DNA of 64,000 nucleotides, from NCBI GenBank assembly GCA_024679065.1, contig JAGIQG010000040.1, forward strand, positions 10,850,001 to 10,914,000. The letters run 5' to 3'. The DNA is from Sphyrna mokarran (lineage: Eukaryota). The notes beneath the pieces were generated by a model. It had not been told where the DNA came from, searched no databases, and saw only the letters and a list, made by a program, of their open reading frames with translations. This document shows, one piece after another, positions 2,958 to 43,791 of this stretch; positions within the stretch are counted from its first letter, which is position 1; the number at the start of each line of letters is the position of its first letter. A program made the position numbers and the translations under genes.

Positions 2958-2994
2958 TTAATTATTCCTCTGGAGACGCTCACTCAGAATAAAT
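2958..2994 (+). promoter_or_regulatory. GPCR-1 proximal promoter: homeodomain TAATTA + EBF/O-E-like CCTCTGGAGA + TATA-like ATAAAT
   Basis: ttaattattcctctggagacg matches 18/21 to the same position upstream of GPCR-4 (41916-41936); ATAAAT at 2989-2994. Confidence 0.55.
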
Positions 2995-3057
2995 GTGGGA
3001 CACAATGAAACCACCGTCATGCTCAGATTTAAACTTCATTTCACTTTCTAGGAGAGG

Positions 3058-3127
3058 ATGCATGGACCAGCGAAAGGTATCTTCTTCGCCATTTCTTATC
3101 CCATTCTCGCGGCCATTGGTGTTCCTG
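3058..3127 (+). CDS. GPR139-like GPCR gene 1, coding exon 1
   Basis: MHGPAKGIFFAISYPILAAIGVP then phase-1 donor G|gtaggt; supplies the first part of TM1. Confidence 0.85.
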
Positions 3128-4339
3128 GTAGGTGAAAGATCCCAAATCATTCTCATGATTTGAACTGTATGGCATTGCATAAACATTAACATTTTATTGT
3201 TGAACATTCAATTTTATTCCAATGTAGTAAAATGCGATCCAGTGTTTTCAGTATTGTGCAGAATAAAGTGTATAATGTGGCCTGTATCTCATCCACTAGT
3301 ATGCACAGTCTCAGAAAAATAAGTTATTACAATCTATTAATTCAATTAGATGCATTGACATAGAGCTTACATTCAGTGGTTGCATGAAACGATGTTGCGA
3401 CCTCCAGCAGTTTATAATTGTTGATCTGTAGTGAGGTGGCAATGGGCTGTCCACATTGTTACTGAGGTTTTAAAAATTAAGAATTAATTATTGAAACTTT
3501 TTGAAAAAAGTTGAGGGGGTTATGCATATGCATTTTGTCTTGTGTTAGTAAGACTGGTAAATTTGCAGTAATTATATTTTTAATCACTAGGTGTATGCAT
3601 GTAGATATGGCAAGACGAATATATCTTGTCCATTTCCATCTTTTATTTGAGAAGGCGATGAGGCGTTGTTTCTTCAGACACTCGGATAAGTAGAATGGGG
3701 ACACTTCACAGAGCTTTACAAATTAACTTTATACTGACAGACAGAATGACTTAGAATTTTTCAACGAATTCATTTTCTGAAGATCGCCCTGAAGAGCAAA
3801 GGGAACGTTTAGTCTTTGAAAGAAGGGGTAGCAGAGGTTAGAGTCTTAGCAGGAAAGGCAAATTGAAAATCAGGGGCATTGAAGTCCACACTCGGAGATA
3901 TAGTGTGACCTCAGTTAGTTGTAGCATGTTACCAACATCTGGAACGGCGAGATATTGGAGGGGTTTAAAATTTGAAGGGCGAGATTATAAAAACAGACGC
4001 TGCCTGAAGAAGGGCTGATAGGGCTGATGGATGGATGGGATTAGTACGAAGAAGAATATTGACAGTAAATTTTGGGAGAATCTGAAATTTGATAGTTATC
4101 TGAGGGGATCAACTCAGTGACCAGAGCGCAGAGATAAAATTAGGACTGATTGCCCCTAATCTAAAATAACTTTAATCCAGTTTTGAATTTAGTGCCATTG
4201 CCGAAACTTTGCATTCACTGGAGTCTAGACTTGGCAAAGTGAAGGATGAGGTCGTTCTCAGTAACTGATTGGATAGCGCAGCAGTTGGTGTTTACAGTCC
4301 TCTCAGTAACACATCTCTCTGTCTCTTTCTATCTCACAG

Positions 4340-5229
4340 CCAACTTGGTGACCATCGTAATCTTATCTCGAGGACGGTGCGGACTGTCACGGTGCATGAC
4401 CTACTATCTTATCGCGATAGCATTGACTGATTTCCTTGTCATCATCACTGCCGTAATCCTCAACCGGATTGGCCGCATCTACTTTCAGAACAGCGTCCTG
4501 TCAACCACCCCGGCATGTACATTCAGCAATCTGCTGGTCTATTTTACGCGGGATTCATCTGTCTGGTTGACAGTGGCTTTCACCATCGACCGTTTTGTGG
4601 CCATCTGCTGCCAGAGGCTGAAGACCAGATACTGCACCGAGAAAACAGCATTGCTGGTTATAGGAATAGTTTGCATCCTGAGCTGTGTCAGGAATGTCCC
4701 TTTCTACTTCACTTACGAGCCCTTGTACACCCTGGACGCGGTTCCCTGGTTCTGTGTTTTTAAGTCCAGGTATTACACGCTGCCCGCCTGGCAGGCATTT
4801 GGCTGGCTGGACAATATCTTAACTCCGTTTCTCCCGTTCCTCCTCATCCTGCTTCTTAATGCTCTGACCATAAAACACATCTTAGCGGCCAGCAGAGCTC
4901 GCAGGAGACTCCGGGGCACGGAGAGTCACGGAGATCCAGAGATGGCCAACCGCAAGAGGTCCATCATCCTGCTCTTCGCCATCGCCCTCAGCTTCCTCCT
5001 CCTCTGGGTCACCTATGTCATATACTTCCTCTATGTGTGGATTACAGGTGTGGGCTACCGCACCAGCTTGGATTTCAAAGACCCACGGTACATCTTTCAG
5101 GAAACAGGAAACTTGCTTCAGCTGGTCAGTTCCTGCAACAACGTCTTCATCTACGCAGTCACCCAAACCAAATTCCGAGAGGACCTGAAGAAGGTTCTGC
5201 TATGCCCCTTCACCAGGCTCACTGGGTAA
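4340..5229 (+). CDS. GPR139-like GPCR gene 1, coding exon 2 (spliced protein about 319 aa)
   Basis: Acceptor tctcacag|cc; open frame with TM1-TM7, DRF, ECL2 PWFC, TM7 NNVFIY. Confidence 0.92.
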
Positions 5230-6119
5230 AACACACATCAGTACATGCTTGGGTTTCATCAACTTAGACCAATGTGTATTCCATCTCTCTGGAATCAGAC
5301 ACTATTGGGCTTTAGATACAGGACTTGAGAGATGTGAAGCCCATAATACAGTGCTCACAGCCACTGTTATTGCTCTGAATGAATGCTGAGTTACCACAGT
5401 TGCTAACTTCCTGGAAGAGATAATGTAGAGATGGAGATTTCCAGCATTGATGAGGCCCTTTGGCCACATAACACCTATTTAATCACATCCCATTTCGCAA
5501 TAGTTGATTCGTTTCGTTGCATGCTCTGACGTTTCAAATGTTGATCCAAATGCTTCTTAAATGTGAGGGTTCTTTCTCCTGCCATACTTTCAGGCAGTGA
5601 TTTCTCAGTTACCACCACTTTCTCGATTAACAAATTTTTGTTTTCTTTTTCCGCAAATCCCCTGTCAACATGATGCTCCTATCCTTAGATCTATGCCCCT
5701 GATTATTGACACCTCTACGAAGGAGAATGGTTATTTTCATCTGGTTTATCTATATTCCTCATAGTTTGGTACAATCAGTGAAGTTCCTCCCACCCTTCTC
5801 CACTTTAAGGAAAATAATCCCAGCCCATCCCCATCCAGCCTCTTTCAAACGCCGCAAGCTTCAGCCCAGGCAGCATCCTGTTGAATATCCTCAATATTCT
5901 TTCTAACACAACAACATCTGTATGTGCAGTGAAACGAATCTTCGAATGTGTCGTGAATCGAAACTATTCTCCTTGCTAAAGTAGTTCGGCACCAGTATCA
6001 TCCTAATGAATCTGCACATGGTACACTAACCGTGGCATAATGGAAATTCTATAAGTTCCAGCTGTCGCTTTTCATCAATGCTTCTGTTAATAAAGACAAT
6101 TGCCTTGTTTGGATAGATT

Positions 6120-41915: not shown

Positions 41916-41953
41916 TTAATTGTTTCTCTGGGGACGTTTCTTACTTCATAAAT
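41916..41953 (+). promoter_or_regulatory. GPCR-4 promoter: HD+EBF-like motif and TATA-like box
   Basis: ttaattgtttctctggggacg, ATAAAT 41948-41953. Confidence 0.55.
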
Positions 41954-42041
41954 AGGTAATATTTACACTGTGTGTAGCAATTGTTACGTGAACATCATCA
42001 CCAGTTCAGACAGCGATTTTTGATCTCAAAGAAGTCCCGCT

Positions 42042-42138
42042 ATGTTCTGGATTATTCCACTTCAACTTCGTATTCTTTGGGTATTTTACGACATCCAAAG
42101 AATTTACTACCCGCTCCTCGCTGCAGTTGGTGTCACTG
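42042..42138 (+). CDS. GPR139-like GPCR gene 4, coding exon 1
   Basis: MFWIIPLQLRILWVFYDIQRIYYPLLAAVGVT, G|gtgagt. Confidence 0.85.
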
Positions 42139-42889
42139 GTGAGTAATATTTCACTGCATTATTACCCGATCCATGAAATACAATTACTGATGGCATTCTG
42201 TGTAACATTCGCAGCCTGTATCTGGCAATGCACTGAAAACATTACAGGTAATATTTGATCTAAAGCCGACTCGCTGATCACAAATACTTTAAAGCAGCCA
42301 GCGTGTATGGCCCCAATAGTTTTAACTCTGTGTAATTAAATGCGGAGATAATCACAGAAAATGTATTCAACCTTCAGCTCCCCTTCATGGGAACAGGTGG
42401 ACGGCTTTCTGAACTGAATTACAGGATGAATCAGGAAAATATATGGGAAGCGGCTTTTGGAAGCTGTTGAATGTGTTTAATGTTGCTGTTCTGTGAAAAT
42501 TTGCGCAGGCAAATAGATCACAAATAAACTCTGAAACATGGAATAATGTCCAATACACTTCACCTTTTCCTGCTCTGCTTTTTTATTATGGAGCAGATCA
42601 CAAGATATAACTGGAACTGAAATAATATTTCAGTAAAATGATTATTTAATGATTATTGCTGAAAAAAGAGACAAAATACTTTTTTTTAAAGACTTAAAAA
42701 TTAAAAGTGAACTTGAAAGAAATTACTAACTCTGATGCGAGAACGCTTCAGGATGTATAAGAAGATAGAGTCGATTGGTTGGCAAGTGGATTCTGATAGG
42801 TGTAACAAATATTCCACAGAAATCTGATAGATGTGCTGCTCCTGTTCTCAATCTGAAATATGAGTTAATTGTCTCTCTCTTCCTTACAG

Positions 42890-43791
42890 TGAACTTATTG
42901 ACGATTCTTATCCTGTCTCGAGGAAGGTGTGGCCTTTCCAAATGTGTCACACGTTACCTTATCTGCATGTCAGCAGCCGATCTCCTGGTCGTTATCATCG
43001 ATCTCATATTGCGGCAAATTCCTATCTGTTTTCGCTATCAATTTCAGTTCATGGCTCACATTAGAGTGTGTAATATCCACGCCGTCCTGCTTTACGCAGT
43101 CACTGACTGTTCTGTCTGGTTCACTGTCGCTTTCACCTTTGACCGATTCGTGGCCATTGCTGGTCAGAAACTGAAAATAAAATACTGCACCAAGAAAACT
43201 GCAACTGTGGTTCTCGGTACAGTGAGTGTGGTGTTCAGTATAAAGAACAGTTTTTGGTATTTCATGTGTGGGAATACATATTATTTCAGTAATAATCCTT
43301 GGTTTTGTTTTGTACATATCACTGTTACCAAATCACAAGCCTGGGCAATAGTTGAAATTCTGCATTATATTTTAACCCCGTTTATTCCTTTCGTGTTGAT
43401 TCTGCTGCTCAATGTTATAACCATTAAACACATTCTAGTTTCGAGCAAAGTCCGCAGGAGACTTCAGACCCACAAAAGTGGGGAGAGTCAAAGTGACCCA
43501 GAGATAGAAAAAAGAAGGAAATCCATTATCTTACTGTTTACAATATCGGGAAATTTTGTTTTGTTATGGTCAGTGTTCCTTGTCTATTCTTTTTATAGCC
43601 GATTGGAATACATCATGTTAACCAGTGCAGCATTGCCAGCATTTGTGCGGGAACTGGGATTTATGATGCAACTCCTTAGCTGTTGTACAAACACATGTAT
43701 TTATGCCGTGACCCAGACACAATTCAGAGAGGATCTGAAGAATGTGGTGAAACTTCCATTCACTGGAATTGTGCAATTCATTAAAAAGTGA
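42890..43791 (+). CDS. GPR139-like GPCR gene 4, coding exon 2
   Basis: Acceptor ccttacag|tg; open frame; paralog of 27521-28422. Confidence 0.92.

Follow-up and report, generated by a model that had tools for sequence, protein, structure and literature searches.

In the accessible text of the literature on it, GPR139 is described as a receptor activated by L-Trp and L-Phe and expressed in the habenula and brain, and the accessible text of the 2019 'Cartography' paper (PMC6504862) gives the names GPR210A/B to GPR139/142-related orphan receptors of coelacanth, gar and some ray-finned fishes. Here we describe four genes, A to D, for rhodopsin-class G-protein-coupled receptors (GPCRs) with a distant resemblance to GPR139, situated in a 64,000-nt stretch of the Sphyrna mokarran genome (contig JAGIQG010000040.1, positions 10,850,001 to 10,914,000, hereafter the window) that contains no N. 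An earlier annotation of this DNA, made from its letters and referred to below as the original prediction, had called the genes a cluster of GPR139-like receptors with olfactory-receptor-style behaviour; what it gave as background on the aromatic amino-acid response of GPR139 agrees with the literature quoted above. We find that the genes are real and intact, and that they belong to a family that is very large, evolves fast and has expanded in elasmobranchs. This family is very probably a selected and diversifying receptor repertoire, and we suggest tentatively, from its sequences, that its main use may be chemosensory.

Sharks are known for their sense of smell. In the catshark, the published counts accessible to us are 2 canonical OR, 3 ORA, 3 TAAR, 2 TARL and about 35 V2R and V2R-like genes, in agreement with the statement of the original prediction that cartilaginous fishes have few OR, TAAR and V1R genes, and GPCRs in this group are said to show a 'relative paucity' in the accessible part of a paper on the whale shark. 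A 2025 review of GPR139 mentions no expansion in its accessible part, nor is the family mentioned in the accessible parts of papers on the catshark, the whale shark, the Greenland shark and the shark nose, and our literature search, which left subscription journals and supplements outside, found no paper that links the family described here to cartilaginous fishes.

The four rhodopsin-class open reading frames (ORFs) lie at 4246-5229, 17517-18416 and 42775-43791 on the plus strand and at 27521-28537 on the minus strand. All four score above the Pfam 7tm_1 threshold, with E between 3.6e-21 and 4.5e-17, and the only other Pfam match in them is one weak, sub-threshold Srx. When the window was searched by tblastn with the four proteins (E<=1e-3) these four loci were returned with no extra GPCR locus or fragment, nor was a GPCR pseudogene seen, the 'death' side of birth-and-death being without an example here. 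Both strands of the whole window were then scanned for first exons, defined as a methionine-started ORF of at least 15 residues that ends in G[VILA][PTSA] and continues as G/GT[AG] (slashes mark the splice junction). Exactly four matches were obtained, each of them upstream of one exon 2 (Table 1). The donors read GTAGGT in A, GTAAGT in B and GTGAGT in C and D, the acceptors all end in ACAG just before the asparagine aligned with N1.50, and the introns are in phase 1 in every case, one codon before N1.50. ORFs, Pfam 7tm_1 matches and splice sites therefore bear out the original prediction of four intact genes with a common phase-1 intron in the first transmembrane helix (TM1), the junctions being GVP/AN in A, GVP/VN in B and GVT/VN in C and D. 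For the window genes, the query in the homology searches was exon 2.

The N-termini are variable, as had also been claimed, with exon-1 peptides of 23 residues in A, up to 74 in B, 30 in C and 32 in D. These peptides resemble the N-termini of RefSeq models, that of A resembling Scyliorhinus canicula P0279, that of D Heptranchias perlo P0003 and that of B S. canicula P0105, and the TM1 motif (Y/F)YP-LLA-x-G-(V/I)-P-x-N extends to relatives in coelacanth, salamander and teleost. Within the intron of gene A (4246-4339) there is an in-frame ATG that gives an intron-less ORF of 327 residues; an equivalent start is used in the Mustelus asterias RefSeq model P0278, while P0279 is a two-exon model. 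We favour the two-exon form of gene A because conservation of TM1 reaches bony vertebrates. In gene B a tandem repeat covers the start codon and the N-terminus (Table 1), and may be the source of N-terminal length variation in its subfamily; P0105, the S. canicula sister of B, has an N-terminus even longer than that of B. Long N-terminal ectodomains, as in RefSeq models of 400-1,244 residues, were considered and rejected, since by Pfam the extra parts are domainless or come from neighbouring genes, and these models are likely to be fused gene models or annotation chimeras and not receptor ectodomains. The public models P0135, P0142 and P0197 fuse a GPCR of the family to hemopexin, integrin-alpha or voltage-gated sodium-channel domains, from which it follows that family members lie inside or beside unrelated genes.

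Alignment of the four proteins shows the motifs that had been read from them earlier, namely DRF, PWFC in extracellular loop 2 (ECL2) and the absence of proline both from TM6 and from the NPxxY motif. W6.48 is followed by S/V-V/T in all four, which leaves position 6.50 without proline, and N-[VT]-x-x-Y stands in for NPxxY. Among the best 120 relatives of D, DRF is present in 115, PWFC in 109 and DRY in 2, with NPxxY in 1 and [FLC]WxP in none. An AlphaFold2 model of P0003, a relative 73% identical to D, was computed from an input alignment of 126 family members and is a seven-transmembrane bundle with helix 8 (predicted local distance difference test, pLDDT, 88; predicted template-modelling score, pTM, 0.86). 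Because TM1 begins at residue 7 of this model, the N-terminal ectodomain of P0003 is practically nil. A Foldseek search with the model ranks GPR139 (7vug_R, 24% identity) first, and the folds of opioid, AT2, CCK, NTSR1 (neurotensin), ghrelin and chemokine receptors follow close behind.

GPR139 is also the best match of D among sequences of the Protein Data Bank (phmmer, E 7.8e-7, 31.8 bits), with the PrRP receptor next at 3.1e-5, so that by both sequence and fold GPR139 is the closest characterised relative, by a small margin over peptide receptors. The coelacanth protein P0242 forms a bridge, matching D at E 2.8e-25 and GPR139 at E 1.8e-18, with the neurotensin receptor next at 2e-10. On the basis of these E-values and of the coelacanth bridge we place the shark family as a remote branch of the GPR139/142 group. 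The two share the TM1 motif type YY-x-LL...G-x-P-x-N and the lack of a proline at 7.50, but identity is only about 24%, and GPR139 has DRY where the sharks have DRF and LWAP, with proline at 6.50, where the sharks have no proline. The cysteines of the shark family at 3.25 and in ECL2 also align with positions that are not cysteine in GPR139, although the loop alignment is uncertain. The description of the genes as GPR139-like therefore holds only at a distance (E 8e-7 for D), the family and GPR139 being unlike in position 6.50, in DRY/DRF and in the TM3-ECL2 cysteine pair. Moreover, GPR139 is one conserved gene whereas the shark family has hundreds of copies in species-specific clades, and orthology with GPR139 or GPR142 was rejected on the grounds of these copy numbers, of single-species clades of up to 36 members, of DRF and of the missing P6.50.

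The bony-vertebrate counterparts of the shark family are probably GPR210A/B. The nearest non-elasmobranch matches are coelacanth, salamander and teleost proteins that carry the NCBI label 'probable GPR139', and these branch outside all cartilaginous-fish sequences. In contrast to the expanded array of the sharks, these proteins appear among the matches as single clusters.

The size of the family was judged from protein clusters at 90% identity, candidates being selected by word-sharing and accepted at E<=1e-5. Exon 2 of D finds 1,826 of 3,308 candidate clusters at this threshold, exon 2 of A finds 1,452 of 4,640, and a Callorhinchus member (P0206) finds 1,689 of 2,816. The possibility that there are only a few copies genome-wide, which had been raised with the original prediction, is ruled out by these 1,452-1,826 clusters per query. 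The best 120 relatives of D are all from sharks, with 73% as the highest identity (H. perlo 57, Heterodontus francisci 47, Pristiophorus japonicus 12, M. asterias 2 and S. canicula 2). The best matches of A are in M. asterias (88%), S. canicula (81%), Cetorhinus (78%) and Carcharodon (77%), and relatives at 60-63% come from sharks of several orders and from the batoids Leucoraja, Amblyraja, Rhinoraja, Hemitrygon and Narcine. Summing three match listings by hand gives at least about 114 distinct clusters for H. francisci and at least about 86 for H. perlo. The chimaera seems to have few copies, since just 4 of the best 120 matches of P0206 are Callorhinchus proteins.

Wider searches place the nearest relatives outside cartilaginous fishes far away. 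An exhaustive HMMER search over 1.84 billion representatives at 50% identity gave 503 clusters with E<=1e-3, of which 151 reach E<=1e-10 and 110 reach E<=1e-30, and in the ESM Atlas D falls in clusters of 71-190 members, mostly Chordata, which are automatically named 'probable GPR139' (score 0.97). The nearest non-cartilaginous relatives are single clusters from coelacanth (32%, E 2.8e-25), salamanders (29%) and one teleost (29%), the distant bony-vertebrate clusters as a whole being at 28-33% identity. The automatic names at NCBI range over GPR139, GPR142, GPR15-like, galanin receptor 2a-like, FMRFamide receptor-like, sex peptide receptor-like, capa receptor-like, neuromedin-U receptor 2-like and vasopressin V2-like, and because they vary so widely there is no firm orthology behind them.

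Two trees were made, in both of which sampling is biased to the best matches of the queries used. The first (FastTree, 247 rows) comprises two best-120 lists, P0192, P0198, P0201, the four window genes and three outgroups, after removal of two rows with less than 85% coverage. In it a branch separates the coelacanth, teleost and salamander proteins from all elasmobranch proteins, which split into an A-like set of 118 rows and a B/C/D-like set of 122 rows. Clades made up of a single species occur within the B/C/D-like set, one of 36 H. francisci sequences and others of 25, 13 and 11 H. perlo sequences. The second is an IQ-TREE 'quick' tree of 75 chosen rows, in which the supports quoted here are all starred. 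Its A-like clade (32 rows, support 99) has shark and batoid sequences nested in several orthology-like groups, with window A as sister to Mustelus P0278 (97), and its B/C/D-like clade (23 rows, support 100) contains sharks only. Window B lies inside a clade of 7 rows (95), while C and D (100) are together in a clade of 5 rows with H. perlo, H. francisci and P. japonicus (98). The four proteins from chimaera group together in a single clade (100), and certain elasmobranch lineages with long branches diverge at deeper, weakly supported nodes. Instead of the three divergent subfamilies proposed originally there are two deep clades, A being in one of them, although B and C/D do form separate starred subclades of the other. 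The repertoire is large, lineage-specific and clustered, and grows by local duplication, as chemoreceptor-type repertoires do.

The predicted birth by local duplication is evident in genes C and D, which lie head to head in the arms of an inverted duplication of about 3.4 kb (26810-30163 against 44482-41129). C and D are 96.9% identical in the upstream DNA and 96.7% identical across the intron, but 95.8% in exon 2 and 92.3% in exon 1; as the upstream and intron values are above those of the exons, coding divergence is at least equal to that of the surrounding non-coding DNA. By the method of Nei and Gojobori the pair has a nonsynonymous rate (dN) of 0.042 and a synonymous rate (dS) of 0.049, with dN/dS 0.86. 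For B against C/D, dN/dS is 0.26-0.28, and between A and B/C/D synonymous sites are saturated. Just downstream of C and D there are Pro/Ser/Thr-rich low-complexity ORFs, at 26529-27047 (minus strand) and 44312-44770 (plus strand), the former partly and the latter mostly inside the duplicated arms, which are probably repeat sequence and not genes.

The 299 codons were divided into classes by the helices of the P0003 model, the classes having been set before counting. In the extracellular loops (45 codons) C and D differ by 11 amino-acid changes, with 14 nonsynonymous differences (Nd) and 0 synonymous differences (Sd), and in the outer helix halves (72 codons) Nd is 7 and Sd again 0, giving Nd 21 and Sd 0 for the extracellular half in total. 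The inner halves together with the cytoplasmic loops and helix 8 (181 codons) have Nd 7.5 and Sd 9.5, with dN/dS 0.24. Amino-acid changes are concentrated in the loops relative to elsewhere (Fisher p=1.6e-4), and nonsynonymous changes are more frequent in the loops (14 of 109 sites) than changes are in flanking and intron DNA (52 of 1,650; p=2.7e-5). Under neutrality the probability of 0 synonymous changes in 21 is 0.009. On this one pair, therefore, positive selection is seen at ligand-facing positions, and the uniform purifying selection that would have spoken against a diversifying repertoire is not what the counts describe.

The extracellular bias of divergence that had been claimed appears both in these counts and in the column entropy of the family. 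In the B/C/D-like set entropy is 1.72 in ECL1, 1.91 in ECL2, 1.73 in ECL3 and 1.77 at the top of TM6, but only 0.13 in inner TM3 and 0.18 in intracellular loop 1, and the loops are above the inner part with p=2.7e-10. The loops are the most variable region in most GPCR families, and for this reason loop entropy by itself proves little. The pocket is more informative. Its positions were assigned with D2.50, R3.50, W6.48 and N7.49 as anchors, together with an assumed P5.50. In the B/C/D clade D2.57, R2.61, H3.28, L3.32, T3.36, D3.37, E5.39, H5.42, E7.36, F7.39 and Q7.42 are 92-99% conserved, whereas 6.58, 7.32 and 7.35 are highly variable and 5.43, 6.51, 6.52 and 6.55 moderately so. The A-like clade has a fairly conserved pocket made up differently (A2.57, N2.61, S3.28, R3.36, D5.39, D5.42, Y6.51, F6.55 and N7.39), with E7.36 common to both clades. 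Pocket residues thus differ as a block between the two clades and are near-invariant inside a clade. The label 'olfactory-receptor-style' is not borne out, since the deep pocket of B/C/D is near-invariant and it is the loops and the pocket rim that vary; it should be replaced by wording such as a peptide-receptor-style repertoire with adaptive loops.

Upstream of the genes there is a further conserved element. A 20-mer of the pattern TTAATTRTTYCTCTGGRGAC, which was derived from the same sites at which it was counted, occurs three times in the window, 100 bp before the ATG in A and 126 bp before it in C and D, against a shuffle expectation of 0.07 matches. In an independent comparison the 20-mers of A and D are identical at 17 of 20 positions, and B and C/D have a further 17/20 match farther upstream. 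A four-way alignment gives a block common to A-D with a TAATT core, CTGG-G and, 10-13 bases on, a TATA-like ATWAAT. The shared promoter motif of the original prediction is accordingly present in A, C and D, but B has only a degenerate version of it (22/39 columns). That the block has been retained despite saturated synonymous sites suggests constraint. A fragment of a long interspersed nuclear element ends at 2939, 19 bp upstream of the gene A block, and has replaced all sequence farther upstream. Two copies of a retroelement, 86.5% identical, are found at 1942-2939 and 60737-61693, and the ORF at 60925-61899 on the minus strand has a reverse-transcriptase domain (RVT_1, E 7.8e-23).

We explain these features as follows. 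The four genes are probably working members of a class A multigene family that is distantly related to GPR139/GPR142. Each gene consists of a short 5' exon with the start codon and the outer half of TM1 and one large exon for the rest, under a TATA-type promoter with a conserved block of about 40 bp. The family grows by local duplication, as in the 3.4-kb inverted pair of C and D, and after duplication the extracellular loops and pocket rim change under positive selection while the core of the helices, the deep pocket and the side that faces the cytoplasm stay fixed. In this model a conserved 'message' pocket rich in charge (in B/C/D: D2.57, R2.61, H3.28, D3.37, E5.39, H5.42 and E7.36) would be surrounded by a hypervariable 'address' surface, an arrangement that, as we infer from the sequences, would follow the logic of peptide and chemokine receptors, not that of odorant receptors. 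The family would then read diverse ligands, peptide-like or derived from amino acids, and all its receptors would signal to the same partner inside the cell. Its use, at a guess, would be to let sensory cells detect chemical cues that are external or non-self, as a supplement to the few OR, TAAR, ORA and V2R genes that sharks have.

A fuller version of this proposal is that the family may be the missing large chemosensory repertoire of sharks and rays, numbering hundreds of genes in each genome, tuned to cues that are peptide-like or derived from amino acids, governed by a homeodomain-plus-Ebf-type promoter code for one gene per cell, and descended from a GPR139-related gene that is low-copy in bony vertebrates; with all its parts together we regard this as doubtful. 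What stands of the expanded sensory or immune-sensing repertoire first suggested for these genes is a large clustered family growing by local duplication, non-uniform selection and a promoter block, and what falls is the olfactory-receptor style.

Several points weigh against a chemosensory use and the selection invoked for it. The selection signal comes from a single pair of genes in which 31 codons have changed, and the 7 codons with purely synonymous changes between C and D all fall in codons 215-284; regional rate differences or a conversion tract may be the source of the pattern. The 17/20 identity of the A and D promoter 20-mers carries modest weight, as 3.7% of 376 comparisons between random 500-bp segments of the window reach it as well. 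The conservation of the deep pocket is unlike the OR, TAAR and T2R families. Finally, no GPCR is present among the 50 genes most specific to 'brain & olfactory epithelium' in the accessible part of the catshark study, which is weak evidence because low expression is to be expected of any single receptor gene.

Of the other explanations, the one that survives best is that the receptors face pathogens, either as leukocyte or barrier-epithelium receptors for microbial or damage peptides or as pathogen targets, with an arms race driving change in the loops. Formyl-peptide and chemokine receptors are examples of such immune peptide sensing. This possibility fits the restriction of positive selection to exposed loops around a conserved deep pocket, as well as the presence of chemokine receptors among the structural neighbours, although a crude six-frame regular-expression scan found no V-domain signature motifs in the window. 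We consider it a real but doubtful alternative to the chemosensory use.

It is unlikely, in our estimate, that these are receptors for equally expanded peptides of the shark's own, neuropeptide- or hormone-like, that co-evolve ligand by ligand, a situation reminiscent of the expanded invertebrate peptide-receptor families or of rodent MRGPR. The pocket-plus-address pattern would fit peptide ligands, the NCBI names include FMRFamide-, capa-, sex-peptide-, galanin- and neuromedin-U-receptor-like, and a review of GPR139, in its accessible part, groups GPR139 with the invertebrate MIP/allatostatin-B, proctolin and FMRFamide receptors. However, hundreds of species-specific copies demand a matching expansion of ligands. 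We know of no such expansion of peptide ligands in sharks. Endogenous pairs, moreover, are usually kept as orthologues, whereas the B/C/D clade has single-species clades.

Mostly passive amplification, by segmental duplication in a tRNA-rich and repeat-rich region with many copies drifting to pseudogenes without distinct function, would suit the overall C-D dN/dS of 0.86, near 1, the presence in the window of 17 tRNA genes, with repeated blocks of them among the GPCR genes, and the scattering of copies indicated by the chimeric public gene models (hemopexin, integrin-alpha, sodium channel), but is very improbable given that drift cannot produce an inner dN/dS of 0.24 alongside an outer Nd of 21 and Sd of 0, that 4 of 4 copies in the window are intact with no fragment, that dN/dS is 0.26-0.28 for B against C/D and that the promoter block is conserved.

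Table 1. Positions of receptor exons, promoter blocks and repeats in the window
Feature	Positions	Strand	Remarks
Gene A promoter block	2958..2994	+	TAATT, YCTCTGGRGAC, TATA-like ATAAAT; 64-100 bp upstream of ATG
Gene A exon 1	3058..3127	+	23 codons + 1 base: start codon, outer half of TM1; from exon-1 scan
Gene A exon 2	4340..5229	+	295 codons + stop; rest of TM1 to C-terminus
Gene B diverged promoter block	15179..15217	+	22/39 columns as in D (A: 26/39)
Tandem repeat of 42 bp (14 codons), 2.9 copies	15317..15438	+	Spans start codon and N-terminus of gene B
Gene B exon 1	15356..15578	+	Up to 74 codons; internal Met start possible
Gene B exon 2	17518..18416	+	298 codons + stop
Inverted duplication, arm 1	26810..30163	-	Contains whole gene C; 94.6% identity over 3,382 bp
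Gene C exon 2	27521..28422	-	299 codons + stop
Gene C exon 1	29160..29250	-	30 codons + 1 base
Gene C promoter block	29339..29376	-	20-mer match
Inverted duplication, arm 2	41129..44482	+	Contains whole gene D; 94.6% identity to arm 1
Gene D promoter block	41916..41953	+	20-mer match
Gene D exon 1	42042..42138	+	32 codons + 1 base
Gene D exon 2	42890..43791	+	299 codons + stop

The remainder of the window contains other features. ARAGORN predicts 17 tRNA genes between 12369 and 47600, interleaved with genes B, C and D, with types that include Gln, Val, Glu, Phe, Asn, Thr, Ala, Cys, Leu and Arg. Some of these genes lie in repeated blocks, such as 20570-22802 with 23826-25975 (85-91%) and 11760-13028 with 33509-34765 (92%), and the 92 bases at 38747-38838 are a candidate tRNA-Lys(ctt) with the anticodon at position 31 (ARAGORN). 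On the minus strand at 58599-59225 there is a 208-residue ORF of C2H2 zinc fingers (zf-C2H2, E 5.4e-34) with an 84-bp periodic self-similarity, which is probably an exon of a multi-finger ZNF gene.

The significance of the family does not depend on a single use. A receptor family with hundreds of copies has sat in public annotations under a misleading automatic name, and a class A family of this size with an adaptive outer face changes the picture of cartilaginous fishes as poor in GPCRs. It is a concrete gene set for the study of expression and ligands. If the use is sensory this would be a new vertebrate chemoreceptor family, and if it is immune a new kind of diversified innate receptor; in both cases it would be a natural example of a single-copy neuropeptide-type receptor turning into a repertoire.

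Among known systems, the rodent MRGPR receptors are a lineage-specific, peptide-type class A expansion with tens of copies, expressed in somatosensory neurons, in which adaptive change is reported mainly in extracellular parts, with helices and cytoplasmic loops conserved. The extracellular adaptive change seen between C and D is similar, although MRGPR belongs to an unrelated branch of class A and has tens, not hundreds, of copies. With the OR and TAAR families the sharks' receptors have in common a large clustered repertoire, birth by tandem duplication, species-specific clades and a short shared promoter block. They differ in being intron-split, in lacking 7tm_4 and in varying at the loops and rim and not in the deep pocket, and membership of the odorant receptors was rejected because there is no 7tm_4 match (7tm_1 only) and the coding region is split by an intron. 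The promoter block also invites comparison with mouse OR enhancers, in which, according to the accessible text of the description (PMC5608512), Lhx2 and Ebf share a composite site at fixed spacing whose Ebf half tolerates a run of pyrimidines followed by one of purines. The shark block likewise has a TAATT core of homeodomain type beside a pyrimidine-then-purine stretch, a likeness in words only.

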